Assembly (NCBI GenBank): GCA_964304625.1 | Contig: OZ199839.1 | Span: 201,970 to 265,969 of the forward strand | Direction of reading: 5' to 3' | DNA length: 64,000 nt | Source of the DNA: Kudoa neothunni | Lineage: Eukaryota > Animalia > Cnidaria | Shown here: piece by piece, positions 8,908 to 58,953 of the stretch | How the letters are laid out: each line of letters opens with the position of its first letter | Position numbering within the stretch: position 1 is the stretch's first letter | Notes under the pieces: generated by a model | Told to the model about the DNA's origin: nothing | Database searches by the model: none | What the model saw: the letters and a program-made list of their open reading frames with translations, nothing else | Made by a program: the position numbers and the translations under genes

Positions 8908-10294
8908 ATGAAGTTGGATCGCTGTGTTCGGACGTTCATAACTGAAGAACAGGTCAACACTGAAAATCTAGACTATCTAGGTATACTATCTAGAAAATTG
9001 GTCATACATGTAGGCTGGCAACGATAAAAACATAACAACCGGTTGTTGATAATCTATAGCAATTGGCCTAAGTTTGAACAACAACCTAAATATAAATGAT
9101 ATTTTTAGAAAATATCGAGTCCTGGGAATGCAAATTTGGCGAAAAAAGTCGTATTCACGAAATAGCGAGTTCATTAGGATTGACACAAAATGCGAGGGTA
9201 AGGAGCGATGGGATGTGATAGGCCTTTTAAATTTGTTAGGCTGTGCGTCCTAATCATAATATGAACTCATCCACGGGAAACAAGGAGAAATCCACACTGT
9301 TTACTGACCAAATAAAGAAATGGATGATGGCCACATCTAATGCAGATCTTGAAACTGTAAAGGATCTTGTGGGGAGTTATCCTGATCTTATCAATACAAA
9401 GGATCCACTATGGGTATGGTTAATTCTTATTTTTTCCATTTGTTAATATTAATTTTTTAGGGAGTAATTTCAACTATTTTTATGATACTAGTTAATTAAT
9501 ATTTATATATCTTTAGATGGTAAAATTAATTAATTGATTTAAATTGAAACAAAAATTGTAGACAGCATTGCATTGGGCTATTAGAAATGACGATTATTTG
9601 ATGGTGGAATATCTGTGTGATCACGAGGCTGATATAAACAAAAAATCTGTATAATATGATTATTGTTTAGTTTGTATTTTGAATTAATATTTAGTTTACG
9701 GTAAGTTATTTGTGGAAGATAGTTTATTGGGATTAATTTGATTGTGGATTAAGGGGGAAACCCCACTGCATTTAGCCGCTCGGCTGAGCCGACCAGTTAT
9801 TTTTCGTTATCTCACAACTTTTTCAAGTAACTCGATTCATTTATATGATTTTATGTAGCTTACCATTTGTAGATTTGGATTACAGTACTCTGGATAATCG
9901 AGGCCATAAGGCGGAGGTCATTTGTACAAAACACAACACCAACCGATTTAAATATTTCCAAATGCTCTGAGGATACCAATTCTCAAGTGTCGTCAAACTT
10001 TGAAATTGATCTCTCTGAGATATATTCTAAAAGTTCTACTTATTTTGACCTTAGATATTCGCCCGAATGTTCCAAATCTCGTTTGATAACGGTGGTCAGA
10101 GATTTAAAAGTTATGGATTAATTTTTATTTGAATGATTTAAAGATGGCAAATGAAAACCTCAACCACTCACAAACAATCTAAACCATCCTTACAGTTACA
10201 GTACACGAAAAGTGTGGATGATCGAAAGAATGGAGGCTTCAAAGGCTTGTTTAATAGATACCGTGAGAAATTCACCAAAAAATCCACCATATGA
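8908..10294 (+). CDS. SOWAH-like ankyrin-repeat protein, paralog 1 (spliced, with microexons; 5' and 3' exons tentative)
   Basis: Spliced translation KKWMMATSNADLETVKDLVGSYPDLINTKDPLW-G-M-TALHWAIRND...ADINKKS-FT-GETPLHLAA...LDNRGHKAE. GT-AG introns of 42-53 nt in the core. Confidence 0.75.
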
Positions 10295-10575: not shown

Positions 10576-11535
10576 ATGAACACTGAATCACAAGTTAGTC
10601 TCCTCACAGTAAAAAGTAACTCCAGGAATATGCTAGCTACTATATCAATGGAATCAATATTTTCGAAAAAGGTTTATTTTACAGCTAATTGATATAAACT
10701 TGTTTATTGCATCTAGCTCAACATGCTGGAGTATGGGGAGAGATACGATTTTCTGGACAAAAAATGGATGGTGCTTTGCGCCGAGAACGACATCAAAGAG
10801 GTGAGAAATTTCCTCACTATTTATCCCGATTATATCAACTTCAAAGATCCTGTGTGGGTGAGGTCTAATAATAATAATAATGTATTTTAATACAAAAAAA
10901 TAAAGGGAGTATTTCTTTTACTATTTCGACAGCTTTCACTTTTATAGATGGTAATATAATGGTTCACTATATTATTTCATTGTTATTCTGCATAGACTAT
11001 TCTCCATTGGGCTGTGAAGGAACACAACATTGAACTTGTTCGAATGCTACTTCTTGCTGGGCTGATATCAACCCAACTGATGTAGGTACCATTTTGAAAC
11101 GGAATAATTGTAATAATAATTTTTTTTATAATTTAGAAACAAGTATTTTGTATCAACCGTTGAACGTCTATTTAGATACATGTCTAGGGAAGAACACCAC
11201 TTCATTATTCTGTCATTTATAGATTCCAGGAAATAGAAGAAATTCTGACGTCCTCACCTGGTATATCAATTAAAAATTGATAATTAATGAGTCAAAAATC
11301 TAAATTATTTAATGTTATCGTAATGAAAATTTTTGGATAAACGATAAAATTATAGATTGTGACTCTCGAATAGAAGATTTCAACTCAAATAAACCGAAAC
11401 AATACTCACAACTGAGAAAAATGTCGACTAAAAGTTATTACTGTAACATCCCACTCTAAATAAACCAAAGGGACGCCACAAAAAACTGAAGAAATTCTGC
11501 AAAATACTCTCCCTACGGAGAAGTCAAACAAATAG
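10576..11535 (+). CDS. SOWAH-like ankyrin-repeat protein, paralog 2 (one apparent 1-nt frameshift at about 11060)
   Basis: KKWMVLCAENDIKEVRNFLTIYPDYINFKDPVW-G-M-TILHWAVKEH...-KQ-GRTPLHYS, with the same core intron positions as paralog 1. Confidence 0.72.
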
Positions 11536-15192: not shown

Positions 15193-18100
15193 TCATTTTG
15201 CCAAAATCTCAAGGATTTCATCTTGATTAAGCGACTCTTTCAATTCGAGTTGTTTCACCAACTAAAAAAAGTATTATTAATGCATAATAGAAACAGATAA
15301 TAATCAATTACCTGGAAATATTTAACTTCATTATCGGTGATAATTTTGAGAGTCTTTTTGTAGGCCTCTTCTATCAACTCTAATACGCGTGAATCCAATT
15401 TGGTGGCCAATGATTTGTCGAACAAATGAGCATGACCGATATCGGGAACCAAACTATTTTCCAACGAAGGAAAACAGGCATTTTGCATAACTGTATTGTC
15501 CATACCATAGACACCAATCTAAAAGAATTGGTATTAATTGATTTTTTTGACGGTAAAACTAGTTGATACATATGAATAGGCGAGTCTGGTAACTTTCTGT
15601 AGATCGTCCATTGCGCCGGTTGTTATTTTACCGATAAATTTGTGTTCCGCTACTCTTCCTCCAAGTAGTGCAACCATTTGTGACATCAGCTAAATCACGT
15701 TATTACAGGCGTATATTAGTGAATGCGAAAAAAATTATAAAAGTTTTGATAAGAAAAATAATTAATTTTTAGACAGCGGGATGAAATGAGATAGCAAGAG
15801 AAACGCTCACCTCACGACGAGTGACCATGTATTGATCTTTGGGTATGAACAAGTTGTAACCAAGCGCTTTACCTCTTGGAACAATAGATATCTATACGCG
15901 CATTTAGACGATAACACAATGAAATCGAAGAATAGACAAACCTTTCCAATGCGCGTAGGATCAGCTCCAAAATAACTAGCAATAGCATGACCGGATTCGT
16001 GGATCGCAATAGTATGCTTCTCTTCTGGGGAATATTTTTTGAGATTGCTACTGCCAGCAACAACCCGATCAATAGCGTTATCAAAATCGCTCGGCTGCAC
16101 AAATGTAGCGTTGTTTCTAACAGCCAACATTGCAGCTTCATTACAAATATTAGCTATATCAGCACCACTGAAACTTGCAGTAGAATCAGCTAGTCTTGAG
16201 GCAAGTTGTTTCAGTTTAGTAGTATCATTTCGGTCGATAAGTTTTATTTGTTTTAGGTAGTGTTCAAACAGCTCCTCACGACCTTTCTTATCAGGTTCGG
16301 TCAAATGTATGTGTCGATCAAAACGACCAGGGCGAAGTAATGCCTTGTCGATGGAATCAAGTCGATTTGTAGCCGCTATGACAACCACTCTACTGTCGGT
16401 TGTAAAACCATCCATCTCAACTAGAATCTGATTGACAGTGGAATCGTTTTCGCGATGACCAGCCAATGATTTTCCCTCGCGACTTGTGGCTATGGAATCG
16501 ATCTCATCGATGAAAATAATGCATGGAGCGTTCGATTTTGCCACCTTGAATAAAGATCTAATGTGGTAGGCCCCCATTCCAACCAAACTTTGAACGAAAT
16601 CCGAACCAGTTGTCTGATACAATGGTACACCACATTCATTGGCTAATGCTTTAGCAAGGAGTGTTTTACCAGTACCCGGAGGGCCATACAATATGGCGCC
16701 CTAACAAGAAAAATTTTACTGATTTATACAATAATCTTAAGCTAATTTAGTGATTGTCTAATGGAATGGTATAACTTAGAATATTGTGACGGTTTGTACA
16801 AAATAAACCTTTAATTGCATGTCAACATGGACGAATGCCATTTATTCTTTCTATATCTCCTGTTTATATAGATATTTCTATTTCTATAAATGGATAATTT
16901 TTCGTTTATTTTAATGTTCCAAAAATGATTTAATATTAAATGATGCCATGAGCATGTGTTTTATTTAATCTTCGTACCATCCACTTATCGGTTACATATA
17001 CGATCGAACCTAGATTATCCGGAAGATATTTTAAATTTTATTTCGATTTTATTGAAATTACGTCTCGATAAATGTTCGATTATCTGGAATCTCGGAAACC
17101 GTAACAACTATTTAATCATAATTTGGGATAAAAATACCGCCAATCACCGTACGACATATAGCGCATATAGCAATGTAATATTTAACCCTTTCGTACCCCA
17201 ATTTTTTATTTTATTTCATGATTTTTTATATATATTACAGGAACTCAATATTTTAAATTGTATGATTTTATTGTGATAGAAATTAATTAGACGTATAGTT
17301 TCAGCTGTTTTTAATGTGGGTACTAGAGTGGACATTTGGCATGAAAGGGTTAAAACAAAAATATTTATAGGTTAATTGTTTATAAGTTTTTCTTTAAAAC
17401 CTAAGTTAAGCACTCAGTTCTTATATAAATTTCGACTATATCTGAACATATGCTCTTATGTATATTAAACAAAAATTAATTATCGATTATTTAAAAAAGT
17501 ATACTGCTCCTCTCCCATAGTTGTGTATTGTTTTTGGTTTTACCTTCCGAGCGCTTCAAATTCGACTATACACTTATACACTTAGTGCTTTTGGGATCTA
17601 TTAGACCCACTTTTTTCTTTAATATTATGAATGTAAATAATTTTTAAAATTTCATCATGCAAAAATAAAAAAATTCTATCGACAAAATAGCACAATATTG
17701 GCAAAAAACATGATTGGCGAAAGTTTTCCGATACCACCCAAATAATGTTTAGGGCTTATATATTCTTGTTAAATAAATTTTTACGAAATATTATTTGAGA
17801 TTAACTCTCGAAAATATTAAAAATAATATTTTATCAATTATTTCATATATAATTAATTAGATTAAAGCATTACGACACAGCAAATAGTTATCAACAAAAT
17901 GGACTAAAAAGGTCTCCAACGTTCAACTTAATCACCCCTACAAATTTAAACATACGAATAACAGCGCGCGCAAAAATCTTTTTATTTAAATCCCTTTGGT
18001 TTGTATTTCTAGACTGCACACAATTATCATTGCTGGCTCGTAATATTAAAACTGACCCATACAAGTTTAATCTTAGGAATGGGACGCACGCGCAAATCAA

Positions 18101-43668: not shown

Positions 43669-45640
43669 ATGATTACATTACAACTAGTGTTACTATTTTC
43701 AAGTAATAATTGTATATTTCATTGTAATTATTTGGTTAAAATCAATAGTAAGATGCTTCGCATACATTAATTCCGGCTTTTTGGATGATTCGTTTCGAAA
43801 TGATCAAAACCTCAAACTAAATGGTGACAGAGATTATGTTACAATTCATAAAATCAAGTGTACGTATAATCAAAATATGCCCTTTAATCAATATAAGGAA
43901 GATAAATACAATTATGATACAGAGGAGAATAAAATTTGTGATATCATCAATTTACGCATACTAACAGAGAAAAAGCTGATCAAACCTGAAACCGTTTTTC
44001 CGAAAGAAATAAGTTTCTTCTCGCAAATGACCTCAACCTTTAAATTCTTGAAAAAGTCACAGTTTGTCACTGAAAATTTCCCAGTTACCAAAAATGTATT
44101 AAACAGTTATTATAATCAACTTGATCAATTAATGTCGGAAGTTTCTCTTTCCAAAACCGCTTTGAACAAATTGAAAAATGATAACAAAAATTTAATGAAA
44201 AGAGTAAGTAATGCTATTGTGGCTGCATATGATTTGAGGGATAAAAAACAAGAATTGAAAAGATATTTTGAATCAATCAAAAAATCGATAGAATTTTGTA
44301 AAGGCGAACATAAAACTGACTATCTTGGTTATAGAAATATTGTTAGCAGTTTTAATTTAAAAAACAAACTCGACGGATTGTTTAATGAGATGACTCGTAT
44401 TATAAGAAATATTCACAATGTCTGTGATGAAACAAAAAGTGTTCCTCGAGCGGATCCTGTAATTTCCGAGACGTATTCAAAATTTGTTGAGATAGTTAAC
44501 AAACTGAATAATATTCGCAGTGGTGTGCAACAAAATATTGAAGAGTTGAAAAAGAAAATCCGAATGTATGAAACATGGAAAAATGAAATTACGGGAGTTC
44601 AAATATTGAGATTCAATGATGAAATGAATAGAATAAGGAATTACATTGGGGTTGTTGATAATTTACATGCTACGGTTGAAAGGGAAACTAGCACAATTCA
44701 AGGACTAATTTCCAATGTGTCTCAACAACTTGTTCAATTTCCTTCGGAAAGTCGAGGGGTGCTCGAAATAACTATCACCCTATTGAATAAACATTTAAGC
44801 GACCAACAGAATGTGAAAAGCCGTACCAACAATATAAAACAACTAGTTGAACAGTTGGATAATCCCATTACAGAGATCAAATCAAAGCGTGCCGAAATTC
44901 TTAACCAAATAAATGTTTCTATCGAAAACATGAAATTAGCCGTTGAAGTGCTTGAAGTTATCAGAGACATAGAAAACAAACTCTCTCTTACATATGAGCA
45001 TCACAGTTTAGTGAAGTTGAGAGCTTACAATAGATCTCCCGGGGATTATTCAGCCGATGCCGATGCAGAAAGTATTACCAAGTATGTGGAGCTTTTCAAA
45101 CAAAAGAAGAATCTAATTGAACAAACATTAATTGATACCCATAGCCACCATATGGATGTCAATACATATTATAATCATTTGATAGACAATGGCAAAAAAT
45201 TGGAGGAGCAATTCAACTCACATAAATCTAAATCAATCCCTGAACTAAACGTTGTTAAAGATATTCCAAAACTAGAAGCTGTTCCAGATCTGTTCACAGA
45301 CGACGACGGAGATGTAACGGGAGAAGAGCCAAACACTGAGGAAGGATTAACACCCCCAGAAGGAAACAATCCTAAATATACTATACCTAAGAAAAAGAAT
45401 GCAGACCCTCAAAATTCGGTCCCAATAAAAGAAACTAATCAGAGGGAAATTTCTGATTACAATCAATCCTCTGTAACTCCAACAATACAATTGAATAATG
45501 GAAAGAGTCAAACCAATGTAACTGCGTTGTCTAGTGTGATTGTGGTGGTAATAATAGCCTTGGTTGCTGGAGGTTTCGTTTACCACAGATCGTGGAGAAG
45601 ATCCCGTGTCTTCATGAAACATCCAAATGATTTGGCCTAA
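43669..45640 (+). CDS. Orphan type-I membrane protein (signal peptide, long coiled coil, P/T/E-rich stalk, TM, short tail), about 641 aa
   Basis: Exon 43669-43702 plus intron 43703-43748 gives MITLQLVLLFSIRCFA in frame with the 619-aa ORF. C-terminal TM SSVIVVVIIALVAGGFVY is followed by basic HRSWRRSR. Confidence 0.82.
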
Positions 45641-56274: not shown

Positions 56275-57071
56275 CCATTGGTTCATTACACAATTTCCTT
56301 GATATATATTCGTGTTATTTTTTCTATTTAAGAATAATTTAATAAAAGACAATCTTTTAAGATATTTGTGTTAATACTATTTGTACTCAACTGTGTTATC
56401 CTTTTAGGTCATTTTGGTTTATTCTGCCTACACGTTAGAGGTTACTTTAAAATTTAACAATATTTATTCACGACAAAATAAATCTTAATAACAAATAGTA
56501 ATAATTAACTTATTTAAACAAGTTAGAATAAACTAAAAAATTGTGAAGGTCTTGTTTATTGGTTATAAATTGTAAATTGTAAATTATAACTTATAATTTA
56601 TAATTAAGGTTATATCAATTTGTCCAAATCGTATAATTTTTAAGATATTTTTGGTTTTAATAAAGTAAAATTTTATAATAAACTCTTAAAACTTTGTTTG
56701 CTACCGAATTCATGCGTCTGTCACAACAATTGTTGGTTATTTCATGGCAGTGTCTATTGGCTCAGCAGATTAACATCGTGTGTTTTTTAAATTCACTTTA
56801 AGTTGATATATCATTAAATTTAACATTATAAATAATATTTCAGTGATAAATGTATTTAGCAATTAGGTTTCATTGAAGAATACGTAGGAGGACCTTATTT
56901 AGAGAAGGATAGCATCAAGAATTTTACGGTTAAACTTATGAAACGTTTTACCCTCACATAGAATGTTATATTTTTGAATCAAAGAATTCGTCAAGTTTAA
57001 TCTTTCATAAAAATTTAAAATTCATATTTACATGTTCTGATGACTTAAATTTGTGTTATATTGACCCTTAA

Positions 57072-58953
57072 CTTTCCGAGCGCCTCAAAATCGACTATAA
57101 ATATAGTGCTTTTGAGGTCTATTACACCCCACTTTTTATTTAATATTATGAATTTAAATAATTCTTAAAACTTCATCATGCAAAAGTAAAAAAATTCTAT
57201 AGACAAAATAGCACAATATTGGCAAAAAACATGACTGGCGAAGTTTTTCGATACCGCCCGAATAATGTCAAGGGCTATACATTCTTGTTAAATAAATTGT
57301 TACGAAATACTATTTTGGAATAACTTCCGAAAATATTGAGAATAATATGTTATAAATTATCTCATTTATAAATAGTTAGATTAAAACTTTACGGCGCAGC
57401 AAAATAGTTATCTTATTATTATCTGTGAGTTTAAGTGATCAGTAGTATCATTATTTATATCAGATCTTCAACAATATCGATGATCCACCTCTAATTAAAA
57501 ATTTATTATCTACGACAAAACCAAAATCTCATTCCGTAAAAATATGAAAGTTGTAATGTAATCTATACATTTATTTGTGTCCAATGTACTGTTAAAACAA
57601 GCACATTCGGAATGTTCTTCACAGCAATGTTTCTTACATATAACACATATATGTATTTTCTTACGATTACTGTTTCTTGGGCTTACGGCACACAGCACAT
57701 TGTTTACGGGACTTTTTGGAACAATATCAGTGCTATTTGGAATTCCTGCCCTTAATTAAGTTAAAAATTTAGCGCCAAAGAACCGCCGAAGAAACGGAGC
57801 ATGCTGGCGAGATTCTCTAAAAATTAGGCTTATTTGACTTTTCCATCATTGAATATGATTTTGTACAAGAAAAACCAGTTTAAGAGATTTATGTCGATAT
57901 TATAAAATATAACTGTTGGACCGCGTATTGAATATCTTTTTAAGCCTGTGGAGGTGAAAATCCGATCAATCATATCAATAGCTCATTTAATTTTGTTATA
58001 ATAATTTATGCTACCAGGCTTCTTTTTTTTCATCATTCAGTATATTTATATAAGCTGTTGAATTGGCTAAAATTAACAAATCCTTATTATTTCAGTGACT
58101 TAAAAGTCTGTAATTTTCTTTCCATTAAGCGGAAAAAGTGTGCTAAACGACTCCCTTGTTTTATTTTTTTCATTATACGCGGAGCATTCCTCTTATTACC
58201 TCAAAGTGTTCCAACCATGGTAAGAACCATTTCCAATAGCTGAAAGCTCTTTGCAACATTGATTATAAGATTATAATAACGAAAGTTAAACATATTGGCA
58301 TTACACACAACATTTCTGTAAAAATTGTCATCCAAAAATATGTCAAAAAATCCGTTATATGAAAGATTCTCTGACTTTCAACATTCTTATGGTCAGAGGC
58401 CTTCCTTAGAAAGCTTTCTTTTAGTATTTTGGAGGTTTATAAAGCTTCTGCAGCCCCAGATAAGGTTGTTGTCATAATATACAGATAAATTAGCGGCTGA
58501 ATCAATAAAATCAGAATAATCAATGATTTCACTGAAGTCGGAATTATAATCAGCGGAATATATTTCGGTAAAGGCCTCCATGAAGATAAATTTCCGCAAT
58601 AAGCAGCGCGATTCGTGTATAGTCGTATAAAATTGGTGGCATGTATATCTCACTTTTCTCTTTATTTCGTCTATAGATTTTGCTAATATTCTCAATTCCA
58701 TTTTATTATAATTTTATACATAAAATGATAAAATTAAGTTGTGAGGTTTATTGGACCCGAACAGCACCAAGTTTATAATTTTTATTTTATTTTTCATTCA
58801 TTAATGGTAATTCAAAACTTATTTGGCAGACATACAGTGTAATAAATTGTATAAGAATATATCGAGTTTTAGAAAATTTATATAATTGGAAGAGGTAAAA
58901 ACTAATCTTTAATATGGTTTGAGTTCTAATAGACCCCAAAAGCACTCAGAAGA
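57072..58953 (-). mobile_element. piggyBac family B element with a decayed transposase
   Basis: TTAA flanks and asymmetric terminal/subterminal repeats (AGTGCTTTTGRGGTCTATTA). Minus strand has LTMVGTL, IDMIDR and a C-terminal Cys-rich domain CVICKKHCCEEHSECAC. Confidence 0.85.

Follow-up and report, generated by a model that had tools for sequence, protein, structure and literature searches.

Gene structure at the locus

Two members of an ankyrin-repeat gene family, paralog 1 (P1) and paralog 2 (P2), were identified on the forward strand of the window, by which we mean the whole 64,000-nt stretch of DNA that was analysed (G000:C2:201970-265969). P1 sits 1.4 kb upstream of P2. The window belongs to the genome of the myxozoan cnidarian Kudoa neothunni, and the assembly that we searched comprises 40.26 Mb in 4 contigs with ~30% GC. 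The published K. neothunni assembly is described as 40.2 Mb in three chromosome-scale scaffolds with a GC content of 30.41% and a median intron of 49 bp, with a (TAAACC)n telomere on one end of a chromosome and with residual haplotypic duplication (Weber et al. 2025, PMC12239612). In the assembly searched here, a telomere-like (TAAACC)n array was seen at only one contig end (G000:C2:12039536-12040071), which fits the published account (PMC12239612). Its annotation relied solely on protein hints, as the number of RNA-seq reads that could be mapped to the parasite was too small (PMC12239612). Exons of 3-6 nt would not be modelled.

The preliminary description of this locus had placed three very small exons in P2, at 10906-10908, 10948-10950 and 11137-11142. 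All three were found at those positions, and each is bounded by a canonical AG acceptor and a canonical GT donor. The predicted parts of P2 are as follows, with positions counted in the window:

10576-10671 (+), first coding exon; ATG at 10576, in-frame stop upstream, GT donor at 10672
10717-10857 (+), exon ending in KDPVW with ankyrin-like capping helices; phase 0 end at TGG, donor gtgagg
10858-10905 (+), intron of 48 nt, 17% GC, GT..AG
10906-10908 (+), predicted 3-nt microexon GGA, coding for the Gly that is invariant at position 2 of the ankyrin profile; ag/GGA/gt
10909-10947 (+), intron of 39 nt, GT..AG
10948-10950 (+), predicted 3-nt microexon ATG, Met at ankyrin position 3; ag/ATG/gt
10951-10995 (+), intron of 45 nt, GT..AG
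10996-11081 (+), large ankyrin exon, 86 nt in the window; Pfam Ank match on the first 22 codons
11082-11136 (+), intron of 55 nt, GT..AG
11137-11142 (+), predicted 6-nt microexon AAACAA, Lys-Gln; ag/AAACAA/gt, restores the 33-residue ankyrin spacing
11143-11187 (+), intron of 45 nt, GT..AG
11188-11260 (+), 73-nt exon with G-x-TPLH, second ankyrin repeat; phase 1 end, Ank profile matched from position 2
11356-11459 (+), last exon; the open reading frame reaches 11542 in the frame of the sister copy described below, with a 1-nt difference at 11444

P1 carries its small exons at the same protein positions, as had also been proposed. Its predicted parts are as follows:

8908-10121 (+), whole gene, nine exons, in frame from the ATG at 8908
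8908-8980, 9109-9197 and 9240-9413 (+), exons before the microexons
9461-9463 (+), predicted microexon GGA
9517-9519 (+), predicted microexon ATG
9562-9648 (+), large ankyrin exon, 87 nt, Ank match of 31.1 bits
9695-9700 (+), predicted microexon TTTACG
9754-9826 (+), 73-nt exon
9873-9970 (+), last exon, to 10121 in the sister-copy frame

Several other features were observed in the window. A dispersed repeat of ~350 nt occurs twice (17539-17892 and 57068-57412) with 85% identity, and a large exon on the minus strand (15810-16691) encodes an AAA+ ATPase domain with its lid, together with the beginning of a peptidase M41 domain, as in FtsH-type proteases. A 619-codon open reading frame lies on the plus strand at 43781-45640. 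Its only Pfam signal was a weak, sub-threshold match resembling ATG17, and a protein search detected no homologue of the 619-aa product. An Rfam search of the window found nothing.

Two further family members share the layout

Four members of the family with the microexon layout are known in the genome, and the other two, P3 and P4, lie on contig 3:

L005:1480-2625, P3, corresponding to G000:C3, about 3,287,815-3,288,960; found by a six-frame search of the assembly with the exon that ends in Trp (the W-exon)
L047:848-1383, P4, corresponding to G000:C3:3203647-3204182; found by scanning the assembly with the Pfam Ank profile

In P3, the order is an exon ending in K-D-P-L-W, then GGG, ATG, an 87-nt exon, AAGAAT and a 73-nt exon, with introns of 46, 96, 113, 41 and 45 nt between them. 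The last exon of P3 has ~150 codons and is basic and Ser-rich, without a Pfam match. P4 has an exon ending in F-E-W, then GGG, ATG, an 87-nt exon, ATA, CAC and a 73-nt exon, so that the site of the 6-nt exon is split in two (ATA and CAC) and the gene has four single-codon exons. The P4 introns measure 30, 39, 44, 45, 39 and 56 nt. The first of these, only 30 nt long, opens with GG rather than GT, inside a run of four G.

The sizes sum to the same total in every member. P1, P3 and the sister copy of P2 have 3 + 3 + 87 + 6 nt and P4 has 3 + 3 + 87 + 3 + 3 nt, which is 99 nt in each case, or one 33-codon ankyrin unit cut up identically in 4/4 genes. The first residue of this unit is the Gly of G-x-T-x-L-H-W, and its last is the one that precedes the Gly of the next repeat. 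The introns inside it are phase 0 throughout in all four genes, most are about 40-55 nt long, and the exon that follows the unit is 73 nt in every gene.

The proteins themselves have diverged considerably, as the preliminary description had stated of the large exons. Over a gap-free core of 90 residues the family proteins are 20-40% identical, and the W, G and M residues are invariant; the P2 exon at 10717-10857 is 38% identical to its P1 counterpart. The Gly codon is GGA in P1 and P2 and GGG in P3 and P4, a synonymous difference. The Met microexon is always ATG and stands in the context tag/ATG/gtaa in 4/4 paralogs.

The reading frame of P2 is broken in the window and intact in a sister copy

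One defect of P2 was overlooked in the preliminary description. In the window, the exon at 10996-11081 is only 86 nt long, and the open frame of the spliced model is therefore lost within it. Its first 22 codons (T-I-L-H-W...) and its last seven (A-D-I-N-P-T-D) are one base out of frame with each other, and the shift lies at a run of G at 11056-11058.

A sister copy at C2:169635-201769 is 99.8% identical to window positions 1-32129, and the two copies are separated by 200 N. An alignment of these 32 kb has 30 gap openings and 15 mismatches. The sister copy has GGGG at the G run, which gives an 87-nt, in-frame P2 exon. Three 1-nt indels between the copies fall in coding sequence, at window positions 9916, 11058 and 11444, and at all three the sister copy has the longer open reading frame. 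The 1-nt differences at 9916, 10067, 10097 and 11444 alter the C-terminal frames of P1 and P2; those at 10067 and 10097 cancel out, and both copies end in the same frame. Either true allelic variation or errors in the consensus could explain these four differences. No difference between the copies affects the microexons or their splice sites.

The sister copy is most likely an unmerged contig overlap or a haplotig. Since the P2 exon has 86 nt in the window and 87 nt in the sister copy, the frameshift in the window is probably a consensus error, and we take the window copy to be the less accurate of the two. P1 probably runs on to 10121 and P2 to 11542. In this region, the assembly contains a 32-kb duplicate that was left unmerged and in which 1-nt differences break reading frames.

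Splice sites, introns and the ankyrin repeat

AG and GT stand directly around every microexon in P1, P2 and P3 and at 5/6 sites in P4. Across the family, 24 of 27 donors start with GTA and 22 of 27 acceptors were counted as TAG, with 2 of the other 5 truly being TAG as well. The introns that adjoin microexons (n=21) have a median length of 45 nt, compared to 45.5 nt for the other six introns of the family. Without the microexons, the introns would instead be 148, 138, 261 and 119 nt and 105, 106, 92 and 146 nt. Similarity between introns at matching positions of the paralogs is at the level of shuffled sequences (z from -1.7 to 2.1), in agreement with the earlier statement that they are dissimilar. 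The family introns are single-copy in the genome, and an introner or transposon origin was rejected on this ground.

The microexons were then compared with the Pfam Ank profile (PF00023). The 87-nt exon of P1 scored 31.1 bits and the large exon of P2 scored 21.5 bits on its first 22 codons, against a cut-off of 21.1 bits, and an Ank scan of the genome lists exons of P1, P2 (in the sister copy), P3 and P4. In the 87-nt exon, the alignment to the profile begins with the Thr of T-x-L-H (position 4), and in the 73-nt exon it begins with the Gly (position 2); the microexons thus fill exactly the consensus positions that are missing. W-G-M corresponds to profile positions 1-3, with the Gly microexon supplying the invariant Gly, and the 6 nt bring the Thr-to-Thr spacing of successive repeats to exactly 33 residues. 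The reading frame and the ankyrin motif are maintained through the microexons; the break in the window copy of P2 lies elsewhere, in the 86-nt exon.

A multi-repeat ankyrin gene at G000:C1:3649355-3650679 is built of exons of ~99 nt that each encode a single repeat. The introns of this gene are placed immediately ahead of D/N-G-x-T, one codon off the W/G border of the family.

Chance expectation and searches for related genes

The probability of finding the small exons by chance was estimated by Markov-1 simulation of three stretches between the W-exon and the 87-nt exon, with all sub-introns required to be at least 30 nt. An ordered AG-GGN-GT ... AG-ATG-GT appeared in 0, 1.5e-5 and 8.5e-5 of the simulations for the three stretches, and the chance frequency of the GGN/ATG pair is therefore at most 1e-4 per gene. 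An in-frame ag/N6/gt by itself is not rare, being present in 4-16% of simulated stretches. Since the 6-nt exon is unremarkable alone, its support comes instead from its position and from its conservation in four genes. We also enumerated every GT-AG path that contains no more than two internal exons and lengthens the coding sequence by 6 nt. Exactly one such path exists between the W-exon and the 87-nt exon in 4/4 genes, and it always encodes Gly-Met.

Across the genome, the pair of motifs at a spacing of 30-60 gave 15 matches, compared to 17 for a reversed control. Five of the 15 are members of the family: P1 and P2, each found twice through the duplicate, and P4. None of the remaining AGGGNGT...AGATGGT matches in the genome is then followed by an ankyrin exon. 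The background of the pattern thus amounts to ~10 matches in 80 Mb, both strands counted.

Searches outside the genome returned no orthologue. A profile of the W-exon compared against 1.84 billion proteins found only generic multi-repeat ankyrin proteins, a word-index search with the P1 exon gave no candidate, an Atlas search returned generic Ank clusters only, and none of the 86 matches in a metagenome scan for the pattern was related. The sole single-stretch match, P0033, was rejected as an unrelated ankyrin gene from a marine metagenome with a phase-1 intron in its Gly codon. A comparison with SOWAH genes had been proposed. Pfam searches of the family exons reported only Ank at E up to 10, with the exons searched singly and hence at low sensitivity for SOWAH, and the W-exon profile, also a single-exon search of low sensitivity, pointed for this question to generic multi-repeat ankyrin proteins only. 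In a literature search of limited extent, we found no paper that ties myxozoans to microexons and no case of 2-4 consecutive single-codon exons conserved across a paralog family.

Interpretation and alternative explanations

These small exons are quite likely to be genuine coding microexons of a four-member ankyrin-repeat family in which one 99-nt unit is cut by phase-0 mini-introns, as judged from the genomic sequence. The layout is common to four paralogs despite introns that cannot be aligned and proteins that are only 20-40% identical, which indicates that the layout is older than the split between these genes and has been maintained by selection. The preliminary description had argued for purifying selection over chance from two genes, and the argument is strengthened by the two additional paralogs with the same layout, by the synonymous GGG and by the unique Gly-Met path in all four. 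The invariance of ATG at an ankyrin position that normally varies may be due in part to selection on the splice-site context tag/ATG/gtaa.

Chance co-occurrence of AG-NNN-GT in AT-rich introns could account for a solitary 6-nt exon, given the simulated frequency above, and it would have to produce the GGN/ATG pair in four genes against its rarity in each one and against a background of ~10 matches in the genome. The probability of this explanation is close to nil, and chance is effectively refuted for the 3+3 pair. Another reading is that the 7-mers are intronic signals, such as G-run enhancers and decoy or ratchet sites, within one long intron, and that the large exons are joined directly. 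G triplets act as splicing enhancers in short introns, and both AGGGAGT and AGGGGGT contain one. This reading leaves unexplained why the trinucleotides supply the missing ankyrin consensus residues and why the sum is 99 nt in 4/4 genes. It also replaces sub-introns of a length typical for the genome with composite introns of 2-5 times the median, and a zero-length recursive site needs an AG that abuts a GT, whereas here 3 nt lie between them and no GT is regenerated. We regard it as very unlikely.

It is quite unlikely that P2 is a decaying pseudogene whose microexon-like motifs are relics no longer under selection. The 1-nt deletion in the 87-nt exon of the window copy would fit such decay, as would the second 1-nt difference in the last exon of P2. 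At both sites, however, the sister copy, which lies just before the 200-N gap, is in frame, and all P2 splice sites are intact. The predominance of 1-nt indels among the differences between the copies is typical of consensus error at a contig end, and P1 has the same kind of defect in the window at 9916. On this evidence P2 is not a pseudogene, and its frameshift in the window would represent a consensus error, or an allele, at a thinly covered contig end rather than the death of the gene. The microexons could also be real and yet be cassettes, included in only some transcripts or life stages, with isoforms that have or lack the Gly-Met hairpin residues. Because all the introns are phase 0, skipping any or all of the microexons keeps the frame, and inclusion is thus not necessarily constitutive; most known animal 3-nt exons are in fact alternative, for example those of cytohesin-1 (PMC6314551) and RPS24 (PMC11162997). 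Skipping would, on the other hand, drop the invariant Gly at ankyrin position 2 and break the 33-residue spacing, and the sequence has no sign of regulation. We consider such cassette use unlikely.

If the microexons are genuine and constitutively included, each mini-intron would be recognised as a unit by intron definition, which is usual in genomes with mini-introns. Next to a 3-nt exon, the footprints of the two splice sites would overlap and could not be occupied at once, so that the flanking introns would have to be removed one after another. Following the first removal, the microexon would be the tip of a larger exon of normal size. The outer two introns look like ordinary borders of a repeat unit and the inner three or four like additions, and the extra introns may have been gained right beside the borders of an ancestral one-repeat exon. 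It is moderately likely, from the gene structures compared here, that several single-codon exons in a row (two in each of three genes, four in the other) are spliced constitutively by the myxozoan spliceosome, that these runs arose as introns were gained again and again within 3-6 nt of introns already present and that they have been kept since before the old radiation of the family.

If this is true, introns would be packed around coding exons more densely in this family than in any other known animal case, and annotation with protein hints would systematically miss such exons in Kudoa genomes. With a length of 3 nt, an exon reaches the physical limit of spliceosomal processing. If constitutive, the assembly of one 99-nt unit from four or five exons, up to four of them single codons between introns of ~45 nt, would be a natural system in which to study ordered splicing by intron definition and the smallest possible exon size, as well as a clear case of intron gain clustering beside existing introns. 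It would also serve as a warning that gene models of compact parasite genomes built without RNA evidence can lose residues critical to a motif.

Comparison with known systems

In form, the exons resemble the coding microexons of plants, which are 1-15 nt long, constitutive, conserved and usually unannotated (Yu et al. 2022, PMC8831610). Like these, the Kudoa exons are tiny, fixed in size and phase, conserved across homologues and located inside protein motifs. Adjacent microexons also exist in plants, as with the 5-nt and 12-nt pair of a rice gene (PMC8831610). The present case differs from the plant one in having 2-4 predicted consecutive single-codon exons in one 99-nt unit, in an animal (a myxozoan cnidarian) and with separating introns of only about 40-55 nt.

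Exons of 3 nt have been described in animals for cytohesin-1 (PMC6314551) and MAP4K5 (PMC8632122), and RPS24 has a 3-bp exon within a trio of microexons (PMC11162997, PMC12686416). As in those genes, one residue is added and canonical splice sites stand on both sides. The known animal 3-nt microexons are single, mostly alternative cassettes between long introns in genomes that use exon definition, whereas the Kudoa exons are paired, lie amid mini-introns and seem to be required for a canonical fold motif.

Recursive splicing and [D1,2] stwintrons (PMC9024468, PMC12403724) are similar in that neighbouring reactions would have to be sequential, as their sites overlap. They differ from the Kudoa arrangement, which has neither a zero-length AG/GT ratchet nor a donor split by a nested intron. 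AG and GT are separated by 3 or 6 nt at the microexons, no GT is regenerated after ligation of the upstream exon and, unlike in recursive splicing, the 3 nt stay in the predicted mRNA.

The outer introns (W/G and x/G) are 99 coding nt apart, as in ankyrin genes with one repeat per exon, and this spacing matches the other ankyrin gene of this genome as well as the unrelated metagenomic eukaryote gene. In contrast to such genes, the unit is interrupted here by additional introns, three or four in number, all of them within 3-6 nt of where it begins or ends. Two to four consecutive, conserved single-codon exons would be an extreme new form of known microexons.
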